Shown here one piece after another: positions 4,343-61,151 of a stretch of DNA of 64,000 bases. The notes beneath the pieces are model-generated. The model worked only from the letters and a program-made list of their open reading frames with translations, was not told the DNA's origin and did no database searches. Position 1 is the stretch's first letter. Each line of letters starts with the position of its first letter. The stretch spans positions 1-64,000 of IMG/VR virus record IMGVR_UViG_3300046167_000825; one strand, given 5' to 3'. Both the position numbers and the translations under genes were made by a program.

Positions 4343-4396
4343 TTGGGGTCGCTTCTTTGATATCTTTCCGTATAGGGGACACACAAGGAGCAACCA

Positions 4397-9526: not shown

Positions 9527-9532
9527 ACGGTT

Positions 9533-9580
9533 GCGGTTGTAGTTTTAAGAGAGATCCGTATAGGTGTTGCAATCAACATT
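9533..9580 (+). promoter_or_regulatory. Repeated early-type promoter cassette, copy 1
   Basis: GCGGTTGTAGTTTTAAGAGAGATCCGTATA...CAATCAACATT; 26/30 identical to copies 2 and 3. Confidence 0.75.
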
Positions 9581-10706: not shown

Positions 10707-10759
10707 TGCGGTTGCACTTTTAAGAAAGACCCGTATAAGAAGTGTAAGCAATCAACATT
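10707..10759 (+). promoter_or_regulatory. Repeated early-type promoter cassette, copy 2
   Basis: TGCGGTTGCACTTTTAAGAAAGACCCGTATA...CAATCAACATT; TTGCAC-N16-TATAAG is sigma70-like. Confidence 0.75.
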
Positions 10760-18182: not shown

Positions 18183-18241
18183 GTTGGTATGCAAGTTCAA
18201 CTCAAAATGGTATAATGCTCAAAACTTCGGTGGAGGGTGTT

Positions 18242-19756
18242 ATGCCATTTTTGTGTTCGGTTTGTGATTTTGAGGTGGTGAATAAGAGGGGTTTGGCGAG
18301 TCATTTCCGTCATAACAAGGATACTCACCCTCCTTACAAGGAATACCAAGTATCTCTTAAATGGTCTGGAAAGGTTGAGGGTGTTGATTTCATTAAGTGT
18401 TTGGAGTGTGGTTATCGTGGGAAGGCACTAGCCCCCCATCTCAAAGCACATGGTTTGACGGGTGCTGAATATCGAGCCAAGCACGGCAAGCATCTCCCTC
18501 TTCGTTGTGAGAAATCCTCTCAGATACGGATTGCTGCCATTAAGAAATCGAGGAGCAGTAAATGTTACGGGGGTAAGAAGTCCGTCCTCTGTGTGGATTG
18601 TGGCGTTTCCTACGAGGTGCATAAACTAGCGAGGGCGACTCGGTGTTCTTCTTGTAAGGAGCAAGCCCAGTGGGGAGGGAAGGTAGCGAACGAGGATTAT
18701 GTTGTTTGTTTGGATTGTGGTCATAAGGCAGAGAACTTGACGAGTCATTATATGAGTGTTCATCCCGATTATCGGGAGAGGCATCCAGATGCTTTAATTG
18801 TGGCATTGGGTTCAGTGATGAGGGACAAGGCTTATTTGCGAGGTCGAACATTGAGTGAGGAAACCAAGCAGAAGATGCGTGACAATGCTGGTCGTTGGAA
18901 CAAGGGGTTGACGAAAGAGGATCATCCGAGCATTATGGCAATCAGTGAGAAGTGTTTGGGTAGGGATTCTTGGAGTAGGGGCTTGACGATGGATCAAGAT
19001 GAGAGGCTTCAGCGAACTAGCGAATCTTTGTTGGCTTGGAATCGTGAGAATGACCGTGACTGGGAATCCTCCTTGAAGAAGAACTATCTCTTGTCGGATT
19101 TTGATCTTTATATGGAAAAGGATGGCAGTCTTGATCATGTGAGAGCGATGGAGGGTCTGGGTACGAGTTTCGTGACATTGAAAAAGTACGCCACCGAACT
19201 GGGATTGGTTTTTACCAATAAGTATGTGGAGGAGAGGTACGAACAACAGATAGTTCGCCTCCCAAAAAAGGCTTTCCAACCTTTTCTAACGAACACTGGT
19301 CGAGTGGATCACTATAAGGCAAAAGAGGTTTTGGTTGTTGGGTGGGAAACACTTCGGAGAGAAATGAAACGACACGGCTTGAAGATCAATCGAGTGTTGA
19401 TTAAGCAGTACCTCTGCCTAGATGCGGTATCAGAGGCATTGGGTGGCATACCTTATATGGAAGAATGGCAACACAAAGATTTCATCAACCCCGACACCAA
19501 TTATAGATATCGCTACGATGGTTATTTCAAGGAGATAGGTTTGGTGGTTGAGTTTCATGGTCACCAGCACTATGAGTATCCCAATGCGTTCCATAAGAGT
19601 GAGGAGCAGCACAAGGCGATGGTTGAGAGGGACAATCAGAAGCAAGCCTACATTGAGAACGCCCCTCATTTGGTGTATCTCTGTGTGCGAGCAGATGAGC
19701 CGTATGATGACATTGGGTATCTGAAGGGCAGATTATTTCAGATGGGTTTGGTGTGA
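18242..19756 (+). CDS. Free-standing homing-endonuclease-like protein: Zn fingers, NUMOD3, C-terminal Vsr/DUF559-like nuclease
   Basis: Repeated CxxC..H..H fingers; LSEETKQKMR and WNKGLTKE motifs; YRYDGYF..LVVEFHGHQHY; GGAGG RBS; extended -10 TGGTATAAT at 18208-18216. Confidence 0.75.
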   Translation: MPFLCSVCDFEVVNKRGLASHFRHNKDTHPPYKEYQVSLKWSGKVEGVDFIKCLECGYRGKALAPHLKAHGLTGAEYRAKHGKHLPLRCEKSSQIRIAAIKKSRSSKCYGGKKSVLCVDCGVSYEVHKLARATRCSSCKEQAQWGGKVANEDYVVCLDCGHKAENLTSHYMSVHPDYRERHPDALIVALGSVMRDKAYLRGRTLSEETKQKMRDNAGRWNKGLTKEDHPSIMAISEKCLGRDSWSRGLTMDQDERLQRTSESLLAWNRENDRDWESSLKKNYLLSDFDLYMEKDGSLDHVRAMEGLGTSFVTLKKYATELGLVFTNKYVEERYEQQIVRLPKKAFQPFLTNTGRVDHYKAKEVLVVGWETLRREMKRHGLKINRVLIKQYLCLDAVSEALGGIPYMEEWQHKDFINPDTNYRYRYDGYFKEIGLVVEFHGHQHYEYPNAFHKSEEQHKAMVERDNQKQAYIENAPHLVYLCVRADEPYDDIGYLKGRLFQMGLV

Positions 19757-21249: not shown

Positions 21250-21279
21250 TTGCCAAGATCCTACAAATGTGGGTATGAT
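21250..21279 (+). promoter_or_regulatory. Sigma70-like promoter
   Basis: TTGCCA-N18-TATGAT upstream of the Hc1-like genes. Confidence 0.5.
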
Positions 21280-21337
21280 GCTCTGAGAGGCATTTCAACC
21301 TCACTTACACACACTAAAAACCAATGGAGAAACAACC

Positions 21338-21529
21338 ATGTCTGACAAGTCCGTAAAAGATAATGTTCAAGAACTACTGACAACCCTCACCTCTGCTCTC
21401 GAAGAAGCCGAAAAGTTTTCTGAGAAGGGAAATAAAGCGGCTGGAACTCGTGTCCGTAAAGCCCTCCTTGATGTGAGCAAGGGATGTAAAGATATCCGTC
21501 AGCAAGTCACCAATGAGAAGAACGCTTAA
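21338..21529 (+). CDS. Histone H1-like Hc1-family small protein
   Basis: EAEKFSEKGNKAAGTRVRKALLDVSKGCKDIR matches the Hc1 N-terminal signature. Confidence 0.85.
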   Translation: MSDKSVKDNVQELLTTLTSALEEAEKFSEKGNKAAGTRVRKALLDVSKGCKDIRQQVTNEKNA

Positions 21530-21563: not shown

Positions 21564-21815
21564 GTGATGACATACCCTTTTTTAATGGAGAAGATTCTTA
21601 TGATGTGTGAAGCGACAATACTAGCCATGATTGACACTATGAAAGACATGGCAGAAGATGCTCGTAAGTTTGAGGACAAGCGATTGATGAATGAATCTGC
21701 TGGGACTCGTGTTCGTGTCAAGATAGAGCCTCTGAGGCAACAACTGAAGGAACTACGAAAGATGATGTTGGCTATCCGAAAGAATAGAGTTGAGAGTGGT
21801 GTCCGAACTAGGTGA
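21564..21815 (+). CDS. Second, divergent Hc1-like protein
   Basis: EDARKFEDKRLMNESAGTRVRVKIEPLRQQLKELRK aligns with the upstream paralogue; start codon uncertain. Confidence 0.7.
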   Translation: MMTYPFLMEKILMMCEATILAMIDTMKDMAEDARKFEDKRLMNESAGTRVRVKIEPLRQQLKELRKMMLAIRKNRVESGVRTR

Positions 21816-21899: not shown

Positions 21900-22688
21900 A
21901 TGGCTAATCAAGATATGAACCCACAAAATGGCGTTCAAGGTTCTTCGTATTTGTACCAGTATGGCACAACCCCCAACACTCGTATCGTTATGAGTCAGAA
22001 GGTACGCCTTTTGACACCAGCATACGGTGGTGGCGATCAGTTGTACCAAATTGGTCTCGTATCAGATTTTTCTGGTGTTTCTCAAAGTAAATCACATGAG
22101 GTTGCTCGTGGTATTGGTTTCGGTGACCATATCGCAGAAATCGTCCCTGGTGTAACTTCCGAAGTGGGGATTTCGATAACTCGTGCGTTGATGTACTTGT
22201 CTAATATTTGGCAAGCGACTGGTTATGCTGGTGGAGTCGATGGTGCAGTTCGCTCATTGAAGCATCACAGATGGCCCTTCGATTTGGAATACCAATTGGT
22301 TTTCTCTACTTTGGCAGATGCAGACCTTTCGGGGTCATTCGCAACAGCAAATGACACTAGTACAAAAGCAAAGTCAAGCGAGCCTTTTCATGGTGGGCAT
22401 AAGAACTTGACCTACCCACAAGTTTCTGGTGGAGTTCAAGACACCACGCACAGTGTTTTAATCACAATGTACGAAGCGTGTTGGTGGACTTCTTGGGATC
22501 AAGCCAATATGACAGCAGACGGTGGGATGGTGACAGAGAGTGGTGATGCTCAAGTGACAGATGTTCACGATTATTCATCCACTTACGGTGAGTTCCTTGC
22601 TAGTGGTAATGACCCATCAATCGGTCAGAGAGCATCTATTCGTTATGGAACAACACCAAAAGGCGTTTCAGCACCAACACTTGGGTAA
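21900..22688 (+). CDS. Tail tube protein
   Basis: RGIGFGDHIAEIVPGV, RWPFDLE, ITMYEACWWTSW; position before chaperones and tape measure. Confidence 0.78.
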   Translation: MANQDMNPQNGVQGSSYLYQYGTTPNTRIVMSQKVRLLTPAYGGGDQLYQIGLVSDFSGVSQSKSHEVARGIGFGDHIAEIVPGVTSEVGISITRALMYLSNIWQATGYAGGVDGAVRSLKHHRWPFDLEYQLVFSTLADADLSGSFATANDTSTKAKSSEPFHGGHKNLTYPQVSGGVQDTTHSVLITMYEACWWTSWDQANMTADGGMVTESGDAQVTDVHDYSSTYGEFLASGNDPSIGQRASIRYGTTPKGVSAPTLG

Positions 22689-22707
22689 GATTAAGGGTAT
22701 ATTTTCA

Positions 22708-22853
22708 CGGGTCATCGACCTTGTACAATACTAGATATAGATATCAAGACATACAGATAAGCCAACACTTTCTTTGCCTCCCTTCGGGGATGGAAAACAC
22801 ACATTTTATACATACATATAAATATCTATTTTTTGTTCAAGGTTGATCCTCGT
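22708..22853 (+). ncRNA. Candidate structured intergenic RNA leader
   Basis: Outer stems 22714-22728/22833-22847 and 22732-22738/22822-22828; inner TCCC-TTCG-GGGA hairpin. Confidence 0.5.
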
Positions 22854-22877
22854 TTTATCACTAACGGAGATTAACAA

Positions 22878-23924
22878 ATGCTACTAGAACAACTCAAACA
22901 AGCCCTCCAACCCCTAGTCGAATTATCCCGTGCCGAGTCCATCGTTGATGTGATGGGCACGGAGATACATCTTCGTCTTCTTTCACCCGATGAGGAACTT
23001 GCTTGTCAGCAAGAAGCCCAGCAGTTTATCTCGGAGTTTTCTGAGGAAGACGAAGTGGAAGATTTATCCCGCACGAAAGCCATAAGATTCTTGGATGGAT
23101 TCCGTCTGGCGATTTTGTCTAGGGCTATCGTTCAGATAAACGAACTGGACTTACGGGATTTATTTTATCTCGAAACGGGAGAGGAACTCAAAAACGGTGT
23201 CAAAGTAAAGATTCTCAAGACACAAGCGGTTCGTGAAATCGTCACTCAGTTCCCTCGCAGCATTCAAGTTCACATTATGCAGAAGTTCCACATTCTGACA
23301 GAGAGTGTCAATGTTGTCGTGGAAAATAATATCGACACTGACTTTTCTGACGAGGATGCAGAAGTCCAAGCGATGGAAGAAGAACTCCAACGGAAGAAAA
23401 ATGCTGTAACGAATAAGAAGCAGCAAACTGAAGAAAACGATGTCCGTAAACTAATGCGAACTACAGCAAACCAAACGGAATCTTTTGTGTCCGAGAGAAC
23501 AAACACGGCACAAGACATCGAGAACAAATCTAAGGAAGCGTTTCAAAAACAAGAGGAAATGGTTGAAGAACCCGAACCTCAGCAAGTTGCTCCCCCAGAA
23601 GAACCAATTGAGAACATACCTCAAGTGCGAACTCCGATAACACCAGTTTCGGCAACGCCCCCTTCAGTGGGTCAGCCTCCTCCCCCTCCGAGAGAAGCAA
23701 ACCCCGAAGATTCTTTGGTGGTTGCCCCCATGAAACCAGCAACGAACTCAAATATCTTCCAAGAGCAAGAGTTGCCCCCTAGAAAAGTAGAGCCTTCTGG
23801 GATGCAGAATGGACTAGAAGTTTATAGACTCCCCACTCAAGAAATAGGGGAACACACCACTAACCAAACAACAGACACTACCATCAACTCACGCAATCCT
23901 AGATTCCGACACCCCAACAAATAA
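22878..23924 (+). CDS. Tail assembly chaperone with Pro-rich C-terminal extension
   Basis: Between tube and tape measure; IHLRLLSPDEE motif; acidic. Confidence 0.6.
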   Translation: MLLEQLKQALQPLVELSRAESIVDVMGTEIHLRLLSPDEELACQQEAQQFISEFSEEDEVEDLSRTKAIRFLDGFRLAILSRAIVQINELDLRDLFYLETGEELKNGVKVKILKTQAVREIVTQFPRSIQVHIMQKFHILTESVNVVVENNIDTDFSDEDAEVQAMEEELQRKKNAVTNKKQQTEENDVRKLMRTTANQTESFVSERTNTAQDIENKSKEAFQKQEEMVEEPEPQQVAPPEEPIENIPQVRTPITPVSATPPSVGQPPPPPREANPEDSLVVAPMKPATNSNIFQEQELPPRKVEPSGMQNGLEVYRLPTQEIGEHTTNQTTDTTINSRNPRFRHPNK

Positions 23925-23930
23925 TGGGGG

Positions 23931-24962
23931 TTGGCTATGAACCAGCATTCTCTCGACAGAAGACACCATTACAAAGATGTCGAACTTCTTATTGATCAAG
24001 GCTTCATTCTTCATCACACTTCTGTCTTGGGAGTGTCTTTAACTCTCCGTTCTTTGTTCCCTAGAGAGATACGGGAAGTGACAGCCCAAACACACGATAA
24101 GGGTGTTTTCTTTTATCGTTTGTGGGTGGTGGTTCGTTCTCTCTACTCCGTCAATGGGTGGTTGATCGATGACCCCCTTGAACTGTATTCCTTTGTCAGA
24201 CAATTCCCCAAAAAACTCATCCACCGTCTGTTCTATCAAACACTCGGTCTGATGAATAGATATCAACGATCAATGGAAATTGCACAAGCGTATGCTTACG
24301 AACCCTACGGTCGCCACACATGGTTCACCTACGGGCGTGACATCCCTCAGAACGGCTTTGGGCTTGTTAATGGGATACAAACCCTTTGGCAGTTCGTAAA
24401 CATCATAGAGGACAGATTTGAGGACTCCGAGATGCACTGGAATCATGCCAAGTTCATTGCTTCAGCGATGTCACCGAAAGGCGTGAAGAAGCAGAATAGC
24501 AAGGATGAGCAAGCGAAGAAGAAACGAGAGTCTGATAGGGAGCAATACATTCTGAAGGCATTGAAGTTTCAAGTGATGGAAGGTGATAGTGAAACCCCCA
24601 TTTTGGTCAATGCCAAAACAGATGAAGAATTGATGGCAGAGTACAAGCGTTGGGTTGCTGGCGAGCAAGATAATCATGACTTGATCGTTCAGAACTACAA
24701 GGAAAGTATCCGTGCTGGAATGGAACAGAGGGATGAAGAAGCGAGAGCGAGAGTGGCAGAACTGGTGGGTGATGGTGAGCGTGGGGTCTTTTCAGCCACG
24801 ACACTTATGGGTGAGGAAACCATTAAGGAAGCCTTTAAGAGCAGTGTTCGTAGCATAGAACATGAAGGATCGCAAAAGCGTCTATATAAACGCTTCTTAG
24901 GAAGGGAAGAAGTTGGGGGCGATTTCTTCGTTGACGAAAATGGGAGTGTTAAAAGACGATGA
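23931..24962 (+). CDS. Second tail assembly chaperone-like protein
   Basis: Immediately before the tape measure, 4-bp overlap; LTLRSLFPREI resembles the upstream gene. Confidence 0.55.
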   Translation: MAMNQHSLDRRHHYKDVELLIDQGFILHHTSVLGVSLTLRSLFPREIREVTAQTHDKGVFFYRLWVVVRSLYSVNGWLIDDPLELYSFVRQFPKKLIHRLFYQTLGLMNRYQRSMEIAQAYAYEPYGRHTWFTYGRDIPQNGFGLVNGIQTLWQFVNIIEDRFEDSEMHWNHAKFIASAMSPKGVKKQNSKDEQAKKKRESDREQYILKALKFQVMEGDSETPILVNAKTDEELMAEYKRWVAGEQDNHDLIVQNYKESIRAGMEQRDEEARARVAELVGDGERGVFSATTLMGEETIKEAFKSSVRSIEHEGSQKRLYKRFLGREEVGGDFFVDENGSVKRR

Positions 24963-47369: not shown

Positions 47370-47443
47370 GATATACCTCGTGTGTGTTGTGTGTGTGTAT
47401 GAACTCATCTGAAAGACAAGTTCATTACACTATACCCCCCCAA

Positions 47444-50801: not shown

Positions 50802-51024
50802 TACAGCCCCCTTTCTCGGCTTTCATCATTTTCTCACGGAGAGCCACGATCTTGGCTTCTTCTTCAATGATTTCTTTTTCAAAGAGAGTCTTCATGTCAG
50901 TGAACAAGGTGATCAACTGTTTGGCTTGAGGGATTTCTAGTTCCCCCTTCTCTTTCATCTGGTGTGGAACACCTTCAGTGACACCAAGTCGTTCTAGTAT
51001 CTCTTTCATTTCATCTTTTGTCAT
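50794..51024 (-). CDS. Small coiled-coil protein
   Basis: Overlaps both neighbours. Confidence 0.65.
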   Translation of the reverse strand: MTKDEMKEILERLGVTEGVPHQMKEKGELEIPQAKQLITLFTDMKTLFEKEIIEEEAKIVALREKMMKAEKGGCNG

Positions 51025-54000
51025 AGGTTCTCCACACTCTTTTTAATGTTGATTAATTCTTGTTCATCCTTCAAGTCCTTTTCGAGAATACCTCTCGCTC
51101 GATTTGCTGAAGGCAATGTCCCATTTGATTTGTTCGTTCGGAATGAAATCCATGTGTATCTCAAGTTTCTCAAGCGATCTGACGAATCAAGGATATCATC
51201 AAGTCTATCCACGAGATGTGGTCGACCAGAACCAGTCACCAACACTGTACCGTCACGCTCAAAAGAAGCGAAGGGGGTCGTGAGGGCTGGATCAAGAGGT
51301 GTTTCGTAGTCTAAGTTGTATTCCCCACACCAATATCTTCTGTCTTGGACAGAAAGACAATCAGAGGTGTTTAAGAAGGGGGACACATTACGAATACCAC
51401 CCAATGACTCCATGAGAGCATTAGACACCAAGCCGTATCCCCTACTTGTATCTGTGGGGTCATCTATCTCTAGGATGTGATCTTCCAATTGAAAAATGTG
51501 ATAACTCCCCGCTTTGTTTTTACGGGAGGGTTCAAGAATCTCTTCCATCCACGAGAGGGTTCTTTCTCTCTGAGTCAGAACTAGATCAATCATTTCCTCT
51601 GAGAATAAACCAGTCGGTCTGATAATCTTATAAGAAAACGGCTCAAGGGAAGAATATCCTTCCCACTCGTTAACGAGATCATAGGGGGCAGTAGGTCGGA
51701 GATCATTCTGTCCTTCATCCTCACCATCGGGTGACGGAGTGCTGGTCGGGAATGTGCCATTCATTGTTGGGTAAATGGCATACTCTTGCCCCACACTCCC
51801 AAAAGTAACGGGGTTGTCTGAACTCCCAGCGAACTCATTGAGAGGATTCACTTTCAATGATGTGCTGTTGTTTTCTTCGACACGATAGAAGCCACGATTG
51901 TCGTCTAGTTCGGAGGGTAAACCCTCGACAAAACCCGTTCTCCCAAAGACACCTCTATCGCCCATCGGTCGATAGCCTTCTGCATGTGGGTCTATTATGA
52001 TTAAATCCCCTTCTTGAACACCAACGAAGTCAGCACCCACGAGATTGTTCCGAACTACACATTGACCATCGTTCCCAGTCTTAATGACCTTTTTTGTCAT
52101 GATATCCAATAACTCATCCCATGATTGTTCATGGGGAATCATGCCTTGTCGGAGATAGATTTCAAAAGTGTAGTTCGTGGGATTGATTGCTAGGTCTTCC
52201 GTTAGGAACTCATCTCTAATTGAAACTTTATTGGGGAAACTTGAAGCCCCAGAGAGAATGTGTTCCTCTATCAACAACCCATCTTTCAAGATTCTTAAAG
52301 TATCCCCTCGATTCACACCAGAGAGACCCAGTACCCCAAAGAGATAGACATCACTCAGTTCTAAGGATCTATCAGACACATAAGAAACCACGCTACCTTT
52401 CCGTTTGAAATAGATAGGGGGGAGTAAATGCAAAGGCTCATTCAATTTATCTTGTATCTCGTGCCATCTTCTCACTCGTCTGACAGAGAACTTGACCTTT
52501 TCATAGAAGGCAAGAGTGTCAGACCCATTGGGATATGCAGTACTAACAGTGAAGTCACCTATGCTTCTCATCCCAACATTGGTGTCATCCATAGAAAGAC
52601 TGTTTGTCACCACTCGTGGCTCGGCTTCACCCAAGTCTTGAACTGGGATTGGTGTCGTGGGTTCAATGAAGATACCAGCGAGGTCTTTCTGCGTTATATC
52701 AAAGGTGTTTCCGTCTTTGATATAACCCTCACCATTGATAGGTAGCACCTCTGAGATATCTATATGAGAAGGCACACCCTCTGTGAACACTCGGTTCTCG
52801 CTGAAAGTACCATGTGTCGTGTTGATAGGGGCTTCAAAGACACCTATCTTGTTGGCAGCCGTTGCGTTCGCATTGAACTCCCCACCAGCAAATGTATAGG
52901 TTTGGCTACCAGTGTCATTAGTGATGATCAGTTCTTCAAGCCCCATTAAGGTTGTGGGATCGACCTCTTCGTACCCCCGAAGCATTTCCATAAAGTCGAA
53001 TCGTGTTGCACCAAAGGATTTAAGATTGGTTATCCCAGAAACATCTCCCATTGTGGTGGGGTTGCCATCTAGGGTTACAGTAGAAATTGTGAAGATACAC
53101 GAACCAAAACCGTTTATCACTTCAATTTCTGCGATGCTTGTATAAACGAACTCATAGACCTCAGTTTCTTTCTCCACGAAGATTGACCCCGTTGAGGGGA
53201 AGCAAGTTCGATTGCCATCTCCCGTGTCAAAGAAATCTCTCACACGGATATTTTTCAGTGTTATCGAGGTGAGGTCATGTGTCTCCACTTTGGCGAAGCC
53301 AGAATCTAAGGTGTTTTGTGTTCCGAAACGAATACCAGTCTTTGTTCTTTGTTCCCCATACGGATTGAGTGGGTCAGAGGGAGCAACCACATTCTTAATT
53401 ACATAAGACCCAGAGGTCACAGCCGTTTTGGTCAGAGATTGGATAACAAGAACATCGCCTTCCACTATGTTTTCTATAACCCCGTTGATGAGAGTCAGTG
53501 GGATGGCTGTGTAGGGGTTAACCATTGTTGTGTCTTGGTTTCCAATGTCTGAGGTGATAGCAAGGAAGCCGTCAGAAACATACCCCTCACCGTCACAGAT
53601 TATTGAAGTGGTGTTCTCATCTGAACTAGCCATAGCCGAGAAGCGAACTCCATTGATGTTCAAGGGAGTATTCTGAACACCCTCCCAAGACGGGACAGTA
53701 AAATCCTCTGTGAGGAAAGTGAACGGTGTCGCACCATTGATTGAGTTCGTTCCGTTTATGTAGGTCATGGGATAACCATCGCCAATATCAGAACCGTACT
53801 CATGTTCCACACGACCAACATACAAAGAGGTTTCAAGGACTAGACTATTGTCATTCGGATGGACGGTATCTCTGACAGTAGAGGCACAACCCCCCAAGCC
53901 CAAGTCATACTTCAAACGATCTGCACCGACAGTAGTCAGAAAAGAACCCGTGTAGGCTTCTTCATTCAGTGGTGTTCCGATACCACCCCAACTATCATCA

Positions 54001-57000
54001 AAGGCGTTCAGCCCCAATGTGAAGTCGAAGAAAACGGTATCATCTCCACCAATAGGTGTTCCAATGAGGGCAAAGTCAAACCAACCAATTCCTTGAACAC
54101 CGAGAACAACATTTGGAGTAGGATATGTCACGGGATCAACTGTATTCATATCCACGATGTCAATAATGATAGATGGACTTGAGTTCTGGGCTATTTTTTT
54201 ATCTACTGATACACCAACATTGAGTGTGTGGTGTAGTTCTAGTTCGGAGAGGATTGCACCAGTGGGGTGATCGATAAGAAGAAGACGGGCAGCATTTCTG
54301 TTTCCTTCTGGCACAGCAGTATCGACTGTCTGATTGAACCAAGAGATAAAACCCTCCCACGAGAATGTCGTTTGGGAAGATAAATCGAAAGTGGTGTAGT
54401 TATTGATGGCATCTTCAAGAATGACCATTCCGTTTTCTGCGTTTCCTAGTCCATCCACGACAGTGGACACATGAGCCATAGCGTTATCAACGATGTATTT
54501 ATCAAGAAGACCACTTTGTTCGGATACAAGACGAGGCACGCCTATGGTATTGCTCCCGACACTCCCAACAGAGAGAATCCCTTGCCAAGATTGTTCATTG
54601 GAATTAATTGGTTCAACCAATAATAGGTCGTATGATCTTACATCTGCAAGTCCAGTTCGGAGAGAGTAAGAGCCATTGACGGGTAGGAAGTTAACCGAGT
54701 CTGTTAAGAGGGCTTCACTTGTTAAGACTCCGTTTCTGCCGACAACTTCATTGGGATAGACGGCATTGTTATTTGAGAGGGCATCTTGGTCGAACAAGAA
54801 ATCAAAGGCTTTCGCCATCTGCCCTAGAACGGCTAGTTCGGTCTCACCCGATTTGAGATAAGGGAGTGTGTAATCCCCGCTGTCGTTTTTCTCTTGTCCA
54901 AGCAAACAAGGGAGTTTGGCTGGTTGCGTGTCCCCATTGTAGAAGAAGGTCACCCCTTCAAGACACTCATAAGGTTCTGGTGGGTTTTGGCTGAGTATCT
55001 TCTGCCAATCGAAACGGTCATCATCTTTTGAGGGGAAGGATTTATCAATCATTTGCCCCGATTTTCTATCGAGAGCGAAATCCCACCAAGTCGAATAGGC
55101 ATCGGACTTACCTTTCAGTTCGGCTTGTTCATCTAGGTCGGGGTCAGAAGGGGCGTTGGGCATGTAGTCATCTGTTCCGATGAATAAAGAATCTCCGAAT
55201 GAGATATCAATCTCCTCGAAAGTAGTTCGTATGAAGTCAGCCACATCCATGATGGCGTTCCCATCCTCATCTTGGAAAGTCAGAACACACCCAGCGATTA
55301 CTTCCTCGATATAAACATAAGTCGGATATATAACCCCATTTGGGTATCCCACAAAGACTTTATCCCCTTTATTGAAAGGAGGCGTGTGGAGGTCATAATC
55401 CCCCGAAGAAGCATCGTATATTTCCCCACCACCGATGACCATACGAGATGTGTCGGGGATTCCCTTTGAATCAGTGGGGAATTGATTGAGGGCGACAACC
55501 GAGATAACAACGGCGGGTCTTTCCCCAATAGTGATACTGAGGGCAGATTCGATTTCGGGGAAACCCGTGGGAGAATAATCATAAACTCTCCCTCTCGCTA
55601 AACGCTTCTGGATATCTAGATCAGAGATATTCTCTATTGTCCCTTGAACGGGATTACTGATCGCTCCGATTTGAGAACCTTTCGTGGAGTACCATTCCTC
55701 ATCAATCTCTCGTCCGTTGGTGAAGACACCGTAAGGATTATCCCCATCAATCAATGTCCCAGCATATGTCCTCGTGAACATATTAGTTCGCTCTGGGAAC
55801 AAACGACTGACAGTGTGATTATCCCCCATTGGTTTGTAAACACCCTTCGTCCAAAAACCTCTAGCCCAATCAAAGGACAGACCCTTTCGCCCAACCAGCA
55901 CGATGTCATCTATGTCATTCCTCGTGTAGGATTTCTGCTCGTTGAGAAAACTCCGTATCTCAGACATGTTGAGATCATCACCCTTCAAAACATAGTCGTC
56001 ACGACTAGCCCCACCATCGGGTTGTACAATAGCATCCTCAATCGTTAAAGGAATCCGAGTCAAACTCAGTTCCTCAAGAGTGTCATTAAAGAACTCCTCC
56101 CACACATTACGAGGGTTTAGGATACCCGTGAAAGGGTTCTCGTGTCCTTTAGGTGTGAGGTCATTGTCACGACCAACAAAGAACTTGAACTTGCCATCAC
56201 GGTCACCTATGAAACCACCCGTCACTGTTTCTCGTACTTGTTCAAACCCAACGATAATACGGTTGTAGACTTCTATAAACATCCGAGCCGCTTGATCTTG
56301 GTTGAGTGTGTCTTTATAAATGCCTCTACTTCCGAGTGACCCCTTCAAGAAGTTCTTGGGTGTGGTTGAGAAGCCCGTTCCAGAACCATTAGTTCCGTTG
56401 GGGTTCATATTCTGAGAGAAATCCTTTGCGACTTCTGCTAGATAGGCATCATTTTTGACAACACGAGTGAAGAAAGCATCGGGTTGACTGTAAAAGTAAT
56501 TACCCTCAATGAACCCTTTTGGGGTTCGGAGAGTGGAGTGGAGATAGGAGGCTCTGACATAGGGGACAACCACTTGTCCGTTTTGAAAGAAGGGGCTTAA
56601 AGCAGAAAGTGCTGTGCGAGACACCCACAAGACATCTCCTTTTTTTAATCCTCTCTGGAACTTATCCAAGAATCTTATATCCCCTTCTTCTGGGCTGCCT
56701 TCGTAATGGACATCCTCAATGAGTGTTTTACCAATGCCCCCCTCTTCAAATAGAACCAACTCAAAATAAGTGTCGGGAACAGAATCTCCCAGTTCAAACT
56801 CAAGGTCATTCTCAGCAAAGATGGGTCGGACAGACACTTTCGGTGGGTGCGTGTCGGGCTTGTACCCATTGGCTAACGGGCTTTGAAGTTTCACGAGAGT
56901 GAAATCCCCTTCGTCTGAGAGTTCCGTGTCCCCCACCAAGAAGACATCATCTCCGAGTTGGATGATACTATTCGTTTCAATGACTTCCGTCAGATTGCCC

Positions 57001-60000
57001 TCAAAGGTCAGTTCGGTCATTCCTCTGTCTGCTGGGAGATAAGAAACGAGGATATCCAACCAAAAGTCTAAGTCTTCAAACAGAGATTCACCACTCACCA
57101 ACATCTCGGAATCATTGGCTGGAGAAAGAGAACCTATTTCTTTTTGTGGTGCTGGAGAAATAACTATTTCAGTGCTTGTTGAGTTGTAGTTCGCTGCTTC
57201 GATTTTCAAGAGGAAGCCATCAATCCAAATCACACCACCCACCACAAAGTCCTCAGTTCGGTCGCCCTCAAGAAGAAAAGTGTCTTGTTCTTCTCGGAGT
57301 CGGAAAGGAGGTCGATAAATGGGATTATTTGAAGTGGTGTAGGATTGCTCCCCACCATCTGCTTCATACACTTGATAACTCGCTTTGAAAACATCACTGT
57401 ATAAAGGATTCCCAACAATGAAAGCCGTTCTGCCATCAAACATCAACTTATTGGTGACGGGGTCAATCTCAAAGGTGTACTCGTCAGTTTGTATTCTAGC
57501 CCCCACCCACAATGTAACCTCGCCATCTGCAATGAGAGTGTCATCTTCTAGATCAATCTCTGCCTTGAAGAAACCCGTCAGAGGGTCTATCTCAGTCACG
57601 GTTAGGTTTTTCTGTCTACGGAACACGGGGAGTTGATCGAAAACTTGAGGTAAGACAACCCCTTCCTCTGTCAGTTTCTCCCCGTCATCGTCTGCTCTAT
57701 AATATCTCGCTTCTACCACTGTTCCTTTCTTCAAGGGCTTCGTGAAGTTCAATGCCCCACCGATGGGATTCGCTTGAACATCTTGACCGAGAATCGCCCT
57801 CTGCACGAGATAGACTTTCCCAACTTGAGTTGCTGGAACAAATACCTCCCTAGAAGAATAATAGAACTCAGCGTGACCCAAGAGAGTGACATCACTGATG
57901 TCTGGCACAGCGTATGCCCTCCCACCGAGATTGTTCAGTGCCTCGTCAGAGAAGCGAACTTCCCCTTGAATGGGAGAACCCCAAGCACCGATTTCGATGT
58001 AATCCCCCGTGTTAGAAGAGAACACATTCACAAAGTGACAGTTTCCGTTACCTTTGGAGTATGAAACCTCACCCCCACCGAAGGAGATTTGAATGAACTC
58101 CCTCTCTAATAAAGGACTATCAATGACATACACACCATTTCTAGGATTTCCTAATAATTGTGACCCTATCTTGGTGGGAGTATAATCATTACTGTCGTCT
58201 GTTAAATCCCCCACACGGAAAAAGATATCACGACCATATTTCTCAGCATCACCAACATCTATAAAGAAAGCCCCACCACTCACAGAAGTTTCAACCAGTT
58301 CGACCAGTCGGATTATAAAACTCTCAGAGGGGAGATGGGATGTTGGATAAAGAATCTTATCAGCGTGAATAGATTTTGAATGACTACCAGAGAATATCTG
58401 ATAGTTCAAGTTCGATAAGTCCTCAGCGAACTGGGGATACACTTTGATTTTAGAGTTCAAGACCTCTTGAACAATGTAACTTCCTTCGAGGCTACCCCCA
58501 AGAATCTTCACTCTGTCTTTTGGGGACACCAGAGAAATCTGATTTGGATCTAGGGTTAGTTCATCCCCAACACTCACGCCATTGAAACCCTCAGCGATTT
58601 GCTCTCCTAGTGGTTCTATAATAGCCACTGTCCCCGTTTGCCCCTCGTCTAGTATGAGATAGTCCTCATCTTTCACTAGGGCGTTGAAAGTCGAACCATT
58701 TGAAACCCAGATGCCCTTATTGAAATAAGAATTGAAAGAACTCTCCACGACCATGTTAGGGGAAAGACTAATGAAGGGTGTTTCCGTTAGGACTTCGTTG
58801 ACTTGTGTGGACTCATCCACCCACATAAAGCGATTGTCATCGAACTGATAGATGATATCGTCATAATGGTGGAGGTCAGTTTGATTCAGACCCTCTCTAT
58901 AATTAAAGAAAACACCTTCACTGAAGCCTTTCATATCTTTCAGTGGTGTTTGGTCTAAATGGTGGAAGAAGTCTTGTCGGACATCCCCAATAAAACCCTC
59001 AGTCTTTTGTGTGGAATAAAAGTCCAGTTCATCTCCATCGGATTCTAAATCTTTATTGTAGGGGCTACGGAACAAACCGAAAGCCATCCCACTATCATTC
59101 AAGAAGCAAATATCCTCAGTGGTATCAACCACCCACCCAGCATTAAAACCAAGAACAGCACAACCCGATAGGTCACGGCTCTTATAAGGAAGGAGAACAC
59201 TGCCGTATTCTTTACTCCCAAAACCAATCTTGATACTCCCCGTTTTATCGGCTGTTTCCAAATATAACCGACCGTTGTAAGCCTTGAACAAACCCAAGCC
59301 CGTATCTAAAAGAGTCTCGCCTAGACTAGAAAATGAATAGGTATTCATTTTTAGGGCTGCCTCTTTTGCTGTAAGTGTTTCAGTGTAGTTCAGTTCGCAT
59401 ACGAACTTTGTGGTGTTAATCTCGAAAGAAAACACCATAGCACTGATTTCATACGGTTCTGATTTCCTAGACGGAATGGAAGCCTCATTGATTGTTCTTG
59501 CTGGAGTCACAAAGCCTTGTCGGAAGAAAACCCCATCGCCACTTTCTAACAGATTCTTTCTGTCCTTCGTATTGAAGCGAACCTCCCCATTCTCCAAACA
59601 GACCATCACAGTCCCCTTCTTAATTCTCCAAGCCCATCTCAAGTCCTTTTCTGAGGCGACAACTTCAAGTTGTTTGGTGGCGAAGGAACTAGAGAAAAAG
59701 ACCTCATCACCCACTGTCTTAATCCTACGAACTAACCCACTGCTAGATGGGAAGGGTTCGGCTGTGAGAGCATTGGGCAACAGACCCGTTCCATCTGGCA
59801 CTCTCAGAAAGCCCGATTGAAAAAGACCATTTGGTGTGGTGCTGGCATCCCCAAGAAAATAATCCTCTCCTTGAAGTGTGAGTTCGGTTGCCTTTGGGAA
59901 AAGAATGGGTTGAGTGTTGTGTGAAACACCATCATAGATGATGGCATCCTCGTAATACAAAACATCGAATAGATTGCTATCGGGATTTGCTTTTTGTAGT

Positions 60001-61151
60001 AAATCATCGTGGAACTTCACTCGACCAGTGCTTTCAGCCCAAGCGAAGGTTTTCTCATTGGGAAGAACTAGAGCATTGAGTTCGGTTTCATTCCGACACG
60101 CTATCGCTGTGAGATGTGTTCTGCTGCCCATCCGTAGCATCGGTCGATCAGTGTATTCTGGGATGGGGGCAAGGAACACGGGTGTGTCGAGAGTCTTCAG
60201 AAGCGAAGCCATCGCACCATCTGTTTCTTCTTGGAAATCATCGTAGGAATACCAAATGAACTTCCCAATATTAACTACCACAAAGTTTGGGTCAAAGACC
60301 AACTTGTTCCCATTCACACCAACAACGGCATCGGGAGTGTCTAGGTCAGATAAGAAATCATACTCTTCAATACCATCGTCATCAACCACCTTCACTTTCA
60401 ATACAGTTGCTGCCTCCGTTGGGAGAACACCCAACCTCAAGGTCGCTTTCACAGTGGGGTCGGAAGGGTCACCTTTAAGAAAAGACCCAATGTCTAAACC
60501 AATCTTCGGTGTGAGTTCGTAGGTTTCATCGGCAATCAATCGACCCAAGTTAATGATATTTGAGCCTTTATAAGGAAGCCAAGTCTGTTTTTCCCCATTC
60601 CATCCAAAACGAGTTTTGGTGTCATTCTTGACCCAATAGAACCCCATCTCTTTGAGGTAAGACTGATGTGAGAGAAACTGATAGTCATTCGTGAGTAATG
60701 TTTGTCCAGTGGTATTGATGTGGGCGTATGTGCCATCCCAAGTGAAATGAATGTCCTTTTGTAGTTCGGTGATAACTCCCCCCACCAAAAACTGAATGAC
60801 TTCCACCGATTCTATTTCTCTGCCTCTGCGGTTTATTACAAGAATCTTATTAAGAACAGCCCCCTCTTTGAATAACTGCGATTCAACACCTTGAACTAAA
60901 GCATTGGATTGAGATATCCGACCATTGTTCCCAGCCCACAGAAGATATTCCTCTGAGTTTTGACCCCCCTCAATGAAAGCACAACGATACTGACTCCCAA
61001 AGAGTTCTGTTAAGACAGTTTGATCGGAGTTCGACCATTCGTCAAAATGACGGACGACTCCACTGGTCGCAGTGGCTGTTGTTTCTGAGTTGCCAACACC
61101 ACTTCTTGAGGGTCGTAGGACAAAGCCCGATAAAATGTTCTGTATATTCAT
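51021..61151 (-). CDS. Giant (3376 aa) acidic virion structural protein, probably baseplate-associated
   Basis: 10.1-kb ORF with GAGG RBS, downstream of the spike gene; D/E/G-rich, beta-like. Confidence 0.75.
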   Translation of the reverse strand: MNIQNILSGFVLRPSRSGVGNSETTATATSGVVRHFDEWSNSDQTVLTELFGSQYRCAFIEGGQNSEEYLLWAGNNGRISQSNALVQGVESQLFKEGAVLNKILVINRRGREIESVEVIQFLVGGVITELQKDIHFTWDGTYAHINTTGQTLLTNDYQFLSHQSYLKEMGFYWVKNDTKTRFGWNGEKQTWLPYKGSNIINLGRLIADETYELTPKIGLDIGSFLKGDPSDPTVKATLRLGVLPTEAATVLKVKVVDDDGIEEYDFLSDLDTPDAVVGVNGNKLVFDPNFVVVNIGKFIWYSYDDFQEETDGAMASLLKTLDTPVFLAPIPEYTDRPMLRMGSRTHLTAIACRNETELNALVLPNEKTFAWAESTGRVKFHDDLLQKANPDSNLFDVLYYEDAIIYDGVSHNTQPILFPKATELTLQGEDYFLGDASTTPNGLFQSGFLRVPDGTGLLPNALTAEPFPSSSGLVRRIKTVGDEVFFSSSFATKQLEVVASEKDLRWAWRIKKGTVMVCLENGEVRFNTKDRKNLLESGDGVFFRQGFVTPARTINEASIPSRKSEPYEISAMVFSFEINTTKFVCELNYTETLTAKEAALKMNTYSFSSLGETLLDTGLGLFKAYNGRLYLETADKTGSIKIGFGSKEYGSVLLPYKSRDLSGCAVLGFNAGWVVDTTEDICFLNDSGMAFGLFRSPYNKDLESDGDELDFYSTQKTEGFIGDVRQDFFHHLDQTPLKDMKGFSEGVFFNYREGLNQTDLHHYDDIIYQFDDNRFMWVDESTQVNEVLTETPFISLSPNMVVESSFNSYFNKGIWVSNGSTFNALVKDEDYLILDEGQTGTVAIIEPLGEQIAEGFNGVSVGDELTLDPNQISLVSPKDRVKILGGSLEGSYIVQEVLNSKIKVYPQFAEDLSNLNYQIFSGSHSKSIHADKILYPTSHLPSESFIIRLVELVETSVSGGAFFIDVGDAEKYGRDIFFRVGDLTDDSNDYTPTKIGSQLLGNPRNGVYVIDSPLLEREFIQISFGGGEVSYSKGNGNCHFVNVFSSNTGDYIEIGAWGSPIQGEVRFSDEALNNLGGRAYAVPDISDVTLLGHAEFYYSSREVFVPATQVGKVYLVQRAILGQDVQANPIGGALNFTKPLKKGTVVEARYYRADDDGEKLTEEGVVLPQVFDQLPVFRRQKNLTVTEIDPLTGFFKAEIDLEDDTLIADGEVTLWVGARIQTDEYTFEIDPVTNKLMFDGRTAFIVGNPLYSDVFKASYQVYEADGGEQSYTTSNNPIYRPPFRLREEQDTFLLEGDRTEDFVVGGVIWIDGFLLKIEAANYNSTSTEIVISPAPQKEIGSLSPANDSEMLVSGESLFEDLDFWLDILVSYLPADRGMTELTFEGNLTEVIETNSIIQLGDDVFLVGDTELSDEGDFTLVKLQSPLANGYKPDTHPPKVSVRPIFAENDLEFELGDSVPDTYFELVLFEEGGIGKTLIEDVHYEGSPEEGDIRFLDKFQRGLKKGDVLWVSRTALSALSPFFQNGQVVVPYVRASYLHSTLRTPKGFIEGNYFYSQPDAFFTRVVKNDAYLAEVAKDFSQNMNPNGTNGSGTGFSTTPKNFLKGSLGSRGIYKDTLNQDQAARMFIEVYNRIIVGFEQVRETVTGGFIGDRDGKFKFFVGRDNDLTPKGHENPFTGILNPRNVWEEFFNDTLEELSLTRIPLTIEDAIVQPDGGASRDDYVLKGDDLNMSEIRSFLNEQKSYTRNDIDDIVLVGRKGLSFDWARGFWTKGVYKPMGDNHTVSRLFPERTNMFTRTYAGTLIDGDNPYGVFTNGREIDEEWYSTKGSQIGAISNPVQGTIENISDLDIQKRLARGRVYDYSPTGFPEIESALSITIGERPAVVISVVALNQFPTDSKGIPDTSRMVIGGGEIYDASSGDYDLHTPPFNKGDKVFVGYPNGVIYPTYVYIEEVIAGCVLTFQDEDGNAIMDVADFIRTTFEEIDISFGDSLFIGTDDYMPNAPSDPDLDEQAELKGKSDAYSTWWDFALDRKSGQMIDKSFPSKDDDRFDWQKILSQNPPEPYECLEGVTFFYNGDTQPAKLPCLLGQEKNDSGDYTLPYLKSGETELAVLGQMAKAFDFLFDQDALSNNNAVYPNEVVGRNGVLTSEALLTDSVNFLPVNGSYSLRTGLADVRSYDLLLVEPINSNEQSWQGILSVGSVGSNTIGVPRLVSEQSGLLDKYIVDNAMAHVSTVVDGLGNAENGMVILEDAINNYTTFDLSSQTTFSWEGFISWFNQTVDTAVPEGNRNAARLLLIDHPTGAILSELELHHTLNVGVSVDKKIAQNSSPSIIIDIVDMNTVDPVTYPTPNVVLGVQGIGWFDFALIGTPIGGDDTVFFDFTLGLNAFDDSWGGIGTPLNEEAYTGSFLTTVGADRLKYDLGLGGCASTVRDTVHPNDNSLVLETSLYVGRVEHEYGSDIGDGYPMTYINGTNSINGATPFTFLTEDFTVPSWEGVQNTPLNINGVRFSAMASSDENTTSIICDGEGYVSDGFLAITSDIGNQDTTMVNPYTAIPLTLINGVIENIVEGDVLVIQSLTKTAVTSGSYVIKNVVAPSDPLNPYGEQRTKTGIRFGTQNTLDSGFAKVETHDLTSITLKNIRVRDFFDTGDGNRTCFPSTGSIFVEKETEVYEFVYTSIAEIEVINGFGSCIFTISTVTLDGNPTTMGDVSGITNLKSFGATRFDFMEMLRGYEEVDPTTLMGLEELIITNDTGSQTYTFAGGEFNANATAANKIGVFEAPINTTHGTFSENRVFTEGVPSHIDISEVLPINGEGYIKDGNTFDITQKDLAGIFIEPTTPIPVQDLGEAEPRVVTNSLSMDDTNVGMRSIGDFTVSTAYPNGSDTLAFYEKVKFSVRRVRRWHEIQDKLNEPLHLLPPIYFKRKGSVVSYVSDRSLELSDVYLFGVLGLSGVNRGDTLRILKDGLLIEEHILSGASSFPNKVSIRDEFLTEDLAINPTNYTFEIYLRQGMIPHEQSWDELLDIMTKKVIKTGNDGQCVVRNNLVGADFVGVQEGDLIIIDPHAEGYRPMGDRGVFGRTGFVEGLPSELDDNRGFYRVEENNSTSLKVNPLNEFAGSSDNPVTFGSVGQEYAIYPTMNGTFPTSTPSPDGEDEGQNDLRPTAPYDLVNEWEGYSSLEPFSYKIIRPTGLFSEEMIDLVLTQRERTLSWMEEILEPSRKNKAGSYHIFQLEDHILEIDDPTDTSRGYGLVSNALMESLGGIRNVSPFLNTSDCLSVQDRRYWCGEYNLDYETPLDPALTTPFASFERDGTVLVTGSGRPHLVDRLDDILDSSDRLRNLRYTWISFRTNKSNGTLPSANRARGILEKDLKDEQELINIKKSVENL

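Follow-up and report, generated by a model that had tools for sequence, protein, structure and literature searches.

In phage T7 the intercistronic RNase III sites (R1.1 type) are simple hairpins, each with a single internal loop, and a genome has many of them. The operator of T4 gene 32 combines a folded nucleation site with repeated single-stranded UUAAA/UAAA motifs, which are bound cooperatively by gp32. Leader hairpins and translational operators that sequester a Shine–Dalgarno (SD) sequence are known in phage and bacterial operons, the MS2 replicase operator class being an example. Mu-gpT-DE and similar phage 'downstream element' RNA motifs are comparative-genomics finds of unknown function. 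Protein-sponge RNAs carry short repeated motifs: GGA in CsrB and RsmZ, spaced GAG/UAG in TRAP sites, and A-rich repeats for the distal face of Hfq.

Here we describe an RNA element, known here from sequence, that follows the tail tube gene of a marine giant phage. Like the T7 RNase III sites, it is a long irregular hairpin in a phage operon after a highly expressed gene, and here, as there, the upstream mRNA could be left with a protective 3′ structure. Unlike the T7 sites, it has conserved loops and an inner hairpin, ~100 nt together, within its closing helix, and is present in single copy. It resembles the T4 gene 32 operator in placing a structured anchor beside repeated single-stranded A-rich motifs, 5′ of a ribosome binding site (RBS), and the logic of that operator was what a preliminary description of this locus had proposed. 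However, the motif, the fold and the position (after the tube gene) are different, and the repeats are not conserved copy for copy. As in MS2-class operators, a local hairpin takes up the SD in its 3′ arm, and the opposite arm covaries, but here the SD hairpin adjoins a much larger closed domain. With Mu-gpT-DE the element shares its place, as a conserved structured motif immediately 3′ of a major virion protein gene; it differs in size and architecture. Several short purine motifs in unpaired regions held by helices recall the sponge RNAs, as do the RGAY repeats, with a 4–5 nt period, of G+C-rich relatives, although the sequence studied here does not clearly follow any of the motif grammars that define those RNAs. 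In kind the element is probably familiar (a leader, intercistronic operator or processing structure of a phage), and what sets it apart is its large conserved adenine-rich loops.

Results

The locus and its flanking genes

The source is an uncultivated marine giant phage, represented by a 289-kb IMG/VR virus record with an estimated completeness of ~66% (CheckV). The window, meaning the whole stretch of DNA analysed, is the first 64 kb of this record, and its DNA is present in many marine and seawater metagenomes. The element lies between two + strand ORFs. The upstream ORF (262 aa, 21900–22688) stops with TAA at 22686–22688 and the downstream ORF (348 aa, 22878–23924) begins with its ATG at 22878, leaving the 189-nt gap (22689–22877) that had been noted previously. 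The gap had been placed in an otherwise tight operon, which describes the genes downstream of it correctly; upstream of the tube gene the spacers are 92 and 84 nt.

Sequence searches with the upstream protein gave no match in Pfam, PHROGs or PDB sequences. A first AF2 model, built from 34 sequences, was unusable at a pLDDT of 42 and gave way to a model from an alignment of 110 homologues (pLDDT 59.6). This model matched the tail tube of phage 812, the eCIS, AFP and PVC tubes, and Hcp1 in Foldseek (probability 0.96–1.0, E = 1.5e-3 to 3e-2), and an Atlas feature search linked the protein to PF26461. The fold thus agrees with the earlier label of the protein as a tail tube, here of a contractile tail. 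After the tube gene come two unrelated ORFs and then a 1214-aa protein with a weak PhageMin_Tail match. From this gene order, and from weak Atlas leads to chaperone families (scores of just 0.82–0.83), the 348-aa protein is presumed to be a tail assembly chaperone. Its ORF is in the same frame as the next (23931–24962), with one stop codon and two further codons between them. The two proteins show no relation to each other, and the frames of their counterparts differ in relatives, making read-through unlikely.

Two small ORFs just 5′ of the tube gene (63 and 83 aa, 21338–21529 and 21564–21815) encode an Hc1 histone-like domain (PF07432, motif AGTRVR). They are kept in all close relatives, and a GGGTATGAT box with TTGCCA as its −35 lies 5′ of them at 21250–21279; co-occurrence of the element with these two genes gave no pattern. 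Between a 1585-aa protein and the tube module is a 513-aa ORF (18215–19756) with a ROS/MucR zinc-finger domain and a homing-endonuclease-like C-terminus. It is missing from this slot in several relatives, which suggests a mobile insertion. The window also holds a very large ORF of 3376 aa on the − strand (51021–61151).

Architecture of the element

The core element occupies 22707–22853 of the + strand (142 bits with covariance model R1, see below) and is made up of a closing helix (P0, P1 and P1b), two A-rich loops (J1 and J2) and a hairpin (P2). The preliminary description had recognized a long closing stem with one G-U pair, then UAGAUAU/AUAUCUA, around a C(UUCG)G hairpin, and all of these were found in their places. 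RNAfold adds an outer helix to them, P0, in which ACGGG (22707–22711) pairs with 22849–22853. The 3′ strand of P0 belongs to the segment CCUCGU (22848–22853), which doubles as an anti-SD segment. P1 pairs 22714–22728 with 22833–22847, with one G-U pair and one U-U mismatch in its 15 positions. P1b pairs UAGAUAU (22732–22738) with AUAUCUA (22822–22828), which is followed by U6 at 22829–22834. The complete closing helix comprises ~25 bp, interrupted, around ~100 nt. The predicted + strand fold has an energy of −37.3 kcal/mol (z = −2.4), and 3 of 200 shuffles folded as well.

Loop J1 carries the four AGAYA repeats that had been reported (22733–22759, starting at 22733, 22739, 22747 and 22755). 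A density of four AGAYA within 30 nt was reached by none of 5000 dinucleotide shuffles, and only one further cluster exists in 578 kb (the record, both strands). The second repeat (22738–22743) is able to pair instead of the 5′ strand of P1b. J1 is enriched in adenines at alternate positions (P = 0.007). Just 5′ of P2 is a pyrimidine tract, CAACACUUUCUUUG (22763–22776), conserved as ACACUU(U)CUU. P2 itself (22777–22793) has the form CCUCCC-UUCG-GGGA(U)GG, with a bulged U. As remarked before, no U tract is found 3′ of this hairpin, where the sequence is instead A-rich (AAAACACACA). Loop J2 (22794–22821) is A-rich without any G and contains most of an (AN)9 run that spans 22808–22825 (P = 0.005).

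Conservation and covariation in close relatives

The tube protein has 853 unnamed relatives in public data, and the DNA downstream of the tube gene was taken from 176 related loci. An alignable element of 188–204 nt was present in the same slot in 10 distinct sequences, all from marine assemblies (Tara included), with tube identities of 62–98%. The alignment of 11 spacers, 10 of them distinct relatives, supports P1 and P2 in RNAalifold, which predicts 20 pairs, 9 of them with compensatory changes. Covariance model R1 (155 positions, 31 pairs) gave scores of 91–143 bits for close-clade sequences and had no other match in 100 loci. In the 289-kb record R1 has a single + strand match, and no second copy of the element was found there. 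Pattern scanning of IMG/VR with the P1 5′ strand gave 21 matches that were rejected as chance, none of them fitting R1.

In the alignment of these 11 related rows, fitted to R1, paired cells amounted to 82.3%, compared with 73.9% in shuffles and 39–46% with partners slid; pairs changed on both sides numbered 14, compared with 7.0 ± 1.7 in shuffles (0 of 500 reached 14); and the covariation score was 0.323, compared with 0.188. P0 shows one-sided and double changes in the relatives (columns 1–5 with 160–164). P1 shows compensatory CG/UA/UG changes at several pairs and is unbroken over 18–19 bp in two relatives, L090 and L092, being lengthened further by P1b in L090. In P1b, some relatives have A-U in place of G-C at pair 37/135. 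In P2 the CC/GG base and the bulged U persist, the UGG of the 3′ base being invariant in the close clade and the next A nearly so, and the upper stem varies in step (CCUCGAC/GUCGA-U-GG, CCAACAU/AUGUU-U-GG). The invariant columns of the loops are adenines, largely at every second position. AGAYA copies vary in number and place among the close relatives, and one UACAGAY site is positionally kept.

The strand was called by counting wobbles, since the + and − strands fold about equally well over 37 spacers and folding energy was uninformative. G-U cells outnumbered A-C cells by 38:11. This excess of G-U wobbles over A-C mismatches indicates that the selected form is RNA of the coding (+) strand. 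The proposal of a structured RNA is therefore borne out by conservation and covariation (RNAalifold and the R1 statistics) as well as by strand.

An Rfam 15 search of 22000–23500 returned one match at E ≤ 10, PhotoRC-I (RF01716), with 12.4 bits (E = 4.8) against a gathering threshold of 45 bits, and this was due to the CCC-UUCG-GGG hairpin alone. The same search of 20 related loci matched no family, so that no Rfam family reaches threshold in these or in the searched part of the window. No 6S family was among the Rfam matches, and likeness to 6S RNA, whose closing stem, central bubble and terminal stem imitate an open promoter, is limited to a closing stem with large loops. No published description of the element was found in the literature. 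The element is a real, conserved, structured RNA and is new as a family.

The SD hairpin of the next gene

Directly 3′ of P0, a second hairpin (22845–22872) adjoins the closing helix and carries the SD of the downstream gene, GGAG (22866–22869), in its 3′ arm. The hairpin was found in 10 of 10 distinct relatives with energies of −3.3 to −10 kcal/mol, so that it is only moderately stable, and in all ten the SD is paired in a conserved local helix, the mark of SD-sequestering operators. The arms occur in three solutions, CCUCGU/ACGGAG, CCAUAUU/AAUAUGG and CUCCUAA/UUAGGAG, with pairing kept. This hairpin is predicted to provide a concrete route to low downstream translation. Pairing of the 20–30 nt after the tube stop codon with the downstream RBS was no better than in shuffles in 9 of 10 sequences, and we therefore rejected a long-range helix by which a terminating ribosome would open the RBS.

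The slot in more distant relatives

R1 had no match in the intermediate and far clades (38–60% tube identity), and homology beyond the close clade is judged solely by position, architecture and shared short boxes. Many spacers in this range have a long closing helix around purine repeats and an inner hairpin, and such analogous elements occupy the same slot where the tube proteins are just 38% identical. The distant repeats are AGAU, AGAC and GGAC, with CAGAY at a 4–5 nt period in G+C-rich genomes. Where 32 copies of AGAT were expected there are 114, and 34 of the 37 unique spacers of at least 90 nt have it. The far clade shares boxes such as AGAUGUAAAU with the deeper branch of the close clade.

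Across the wider family, 105 unique spacers were compared. A strict rule of purine repeats plus a long helix is passed by 30; another 19 hold a canonical terminator only, 10 are under 40 nt, and 46 are unclassified. The unclassified group includes other hairpins and long-helix elements with fewer repeats, 7 of the 11 close-clade spacers among them. Further spacers combine a canonical terminator with other structures. These varied fillings mark the slot after the tube gene as a recurrent control point, and relatives without any spacer indicate that the lineage can do without the element.

Sequence conservation extends to both P1 strands in the far clade, where there are G-U wobbles and no compensatory change. 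The arms GRCGACGAUGAAGAUGA and UCGUCGCCGUCCUC are conserved there (e.g. L041, L049, L062 and L169) although the tube is only ~40% identical to that of the window, which hints at sequence-specific recognition in that clade. In some relatives with 52–58% tube identity (L017, L107, L113 and L135) the slot is taken by another type of conserved hairpin, which has the loop GCGCCAACG and lacks a U tract.

Discussion

A proposed translational and stability operator

The preliminary description had suggested a protein-binding cis-regulatory RNA or a processing site that sets the stoichiometry of tube against chaperone and tape measure, and this receives partial support. Terminators or hairpins often fill this slot in relatives, which makes a role in expression after the tube gene reasonable. 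Our best reading, to which we give about an even chance, is that the spacer is a cis-acting structured domain of the + strand late mRNA that serves as a translational and stability operator. Most likely the element holds down the next tail-assembly protein; we infer this repression, together with a protein partner and an effect on stoichiometry, from the sequence. The ~25-bp interrupted closing helix encloses the two adenine-rich loops and the G+C-rich, bulged-U hairpin P2, and the short hairpin directly after it buries the SD of the next gene. In the mechanism we propose, translation of the presumed chaperone gene, and possibly of later genes, would be kept low relative to the tube gene. The adenine-rich loops and P2 are probably the site for a trans-acting factor that tunes downstream translation.

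The known RNA-binding regulators were considered as candidates for this factor. A TRAP-type array requires at least nine (G/U)AG triplets 2–3 nt apart, and the element has five NAG, irregularly spaced, at 22732–22761. CsrA/RsmA targets or sponges have several A(N)GGA motifs, typically in hairpin loops; here there are only two, AUGGA (P2 base) and ACGGA (at the SD), and the Gs of the invariant UGG are paired. Hfq distal-face sites are single-stranded (A-R-N)n repeats, or (A-N)n for Gram-positive Hfq; A-R-N phasing is absent here, while alternate adenines and the (AN)9 run are present. No Hfq, CsrA or RNase III gene was found in the ~66%-complete record, so any such partner would be encoded by the host or be of a new kind.

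Possible RNase III processing

The main rival to the operator is cleavage, in which RNase III or another endonuclease would cut the closing helix and the abundant tube mRNA would keep a stable 3′ structure, uncoupled from a less stable downstream message, as happens at the T7 sites. Cleavage is compatible with the operator, and as the explanation of the element we consider it unlikely, though the strongest of the alternatives. RNase III sites have about two turns of mostly double-stranded RNA, in which internal loops are tolerated, and the element offers this in P0 (5 bp), P1 (10 + 4 bp) and P1b (7 bp), an interrupted duplex of ~25 bp; the unbroken P1 of L090 and the terminators or G+C hairpins in the same slot of relatives point the same way.

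The RNA libraries also bear on this question. Small parts of the stretch are present in three metatranscriptome runs and in one run that may be RNA. Two metatranscriptome contigs, from separate studies (22562–22811 and 22495–22732), run from the 3′ end of the tube gene into the element without any difference from the window. None of the six full-length-matching pieces falls on 22826–24000, and the chance of all six lying upstream is ~0.03; a seventh RNA record matches over 35 nt only and looks spurious. These pieces are contigs, which are silent on ends or levels, and may include DNA carry-over. At most, they show that RNA libraries contain the element as a continuation of the tube message. 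Coverage of the tube 3′ end and the element, and not of the downstream gene, is in keeping with cleavage, and with the operator as well. Against it, RNase III leaves the conserved loops, the bulged-U hairpin and the SD hairpin unexplained; there is one such site in 289 kb, whereas T7 has many; and with no phage gene for the enzyme in the record, a host enzyme would be needed.

A possible separate small RNA

A further possibility, which we regard as improbable, is that the element is a separate small RNA of ~150 nt, or a promoter-proximal leader, that starts from the box GGGTATATT and works in trans, soaking up a factor of the host or the phage as a sponge or decoy. This box (22695–22703, + strand) is a −10-like sequence (TAnnnT) just after the tube stop codon, 4–7 nt 5′ of P0, with the consensus GGGTAnAnT. 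All 11 aligned spacers, with their 10 distinct relatives, keep the GGGTA plus TAnnnT pattern. Of the 19 occurrences of GGGTATA in the record, 8 are intergenic, compared with 10.9% expected (P = 5e-4), and the intergenic copies are mostly shortly 5′ of start codons. The record has two sigma-70-family genes, at 155358–155504 and 191336–191539 (Sigma70_r2, 46 and 64 bits). Conservation of the box, its intergenic enrichment and these sigma genes suggest that it may be a phage promoter, from which a transcript would start with P0. The element's two ends pair with each other, a trait of many stable RNAs that would suit such a transcript. However, no conserved −35 element accompanies the box in the 11 aligned spacers, and no conserved terminator or U tract follows P0. 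Furthermore, the RNA-library contigs cross the box from the tube gene, and the SD hairpin physically ties the element to the downstream gene.

Other promoter-like sequences were seen during this work. A strong phage-specific motif, much commoner genome-wide, is TGCGGTTGC, about 15 nt, then (T/C)CCGTATA(A/G). Of the 58 CCGTATA copies, 36 are intergenic (P = 1e-20), most of these 6–110 nt 5′ of a start codon; examples in the window are at 4368, 9532–9562 and 10707–10737, and the motif is absent from the + strand structural block between 11 and 64 kb. The two sigma-70-family genes are candidate readers of the two motif classes. A search for a T7-type RNA polymerase gave no match in the record, and none in control genomes either, so that this blank carries no weight. 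Within the element, a T4-type late promoter sequence, TATAAATA, at 22817 was rejected, having only 11 copies in the record and no conservation in relatives, and TACAAT at 22724 was rejected as a −10 element, not being kept as TAnnnT in relatives. Elsewhere, on the − strand at 47380–47440, a small hairpin and then an (AC)n-rich leader lie between another GGGTATAGT box and a start codon. This leader echoes the CA-rich loop J2 and the ACACACAC leader at 21305–21315.

Less likely: termination and DNA-level elements

It is less probable still, to the point of a slim chance, that the element attenuates or terminates transcription, so that less of it reads through beyond the tube gene. Such a function is clearly available to this slot, as 19 of the 105 unique spacers of relatives are a canonical hairpin and U tract only and others combine these with further structures, and the RNA pieces do end before the downstream gene. 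The preliminary description had named a plain terminator as a finding that would overturn it. This is not what the sequence holds: the run after P2 is A-rich, and a scan of 22689–22877 for intrinsic terminators gave no site. A UUUU does follow P0 in the window, but it is not conserved in relatives. A closing helix around ~100 nt is moreover unlike intrinsic terminators, and the loops, which are not C-rich and G-poor throughout the family, are unlike Rho sites. A DNA-level element, either repeated protein-binding sites with inverted repeats or the relic of an inserted mobile element, could account for the direct and inverted repeats of the spacer, the far-clade P1 strands conserved without compensatory change and the presence of the element in some lineages and absence from others, but is very improbable in view of the G-U:A-C ratio, the conserved bulges, the compensatory changes, and a single copy whose position is fixed across deep divergence.

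A candidate RNA class and its meaning

Beyond the operator of a single lineage, we tentatively suggest, as an idea more likely wrong than right, that the element is the founding member of an undescribed and widespread phage RNA class, in which a closed scaffold would present an oligomeric protein with a landing site made of adenine-rich RGAY/(AN)n repeats and a bulged-U hairpin. Candidates for the protein are a host RNA chaperone and a tail protein acting autogenously, for instance the tube or its chaperone. The analogous elements in lineages with 38% tube identity and the shared boxes such as AGAUGUAAAU are the grounds for this idea. If this were true, the output of tail components in giant phages would be set by RNA-level feedback.

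Almost all knowledge of oceanic giant phages comes from metagenomes, and the way in which they match hundreds of tube subunits to the few copies of chaperone and tape measure that a tail requires is very poorly understood. The spacer described here gives a conserved and testable RNA handle on this balance of tail proteins, with its helices, its sequestered RBS and its displayed loops, and the element is a candidate new RNA family for public libraries. Should the loops bind no protein, it would still be a well-supported leader or processing structure in a lineage without cultured members. Should they bind one, the element would add a new case to RNA-level feedback in the assembly of virions.
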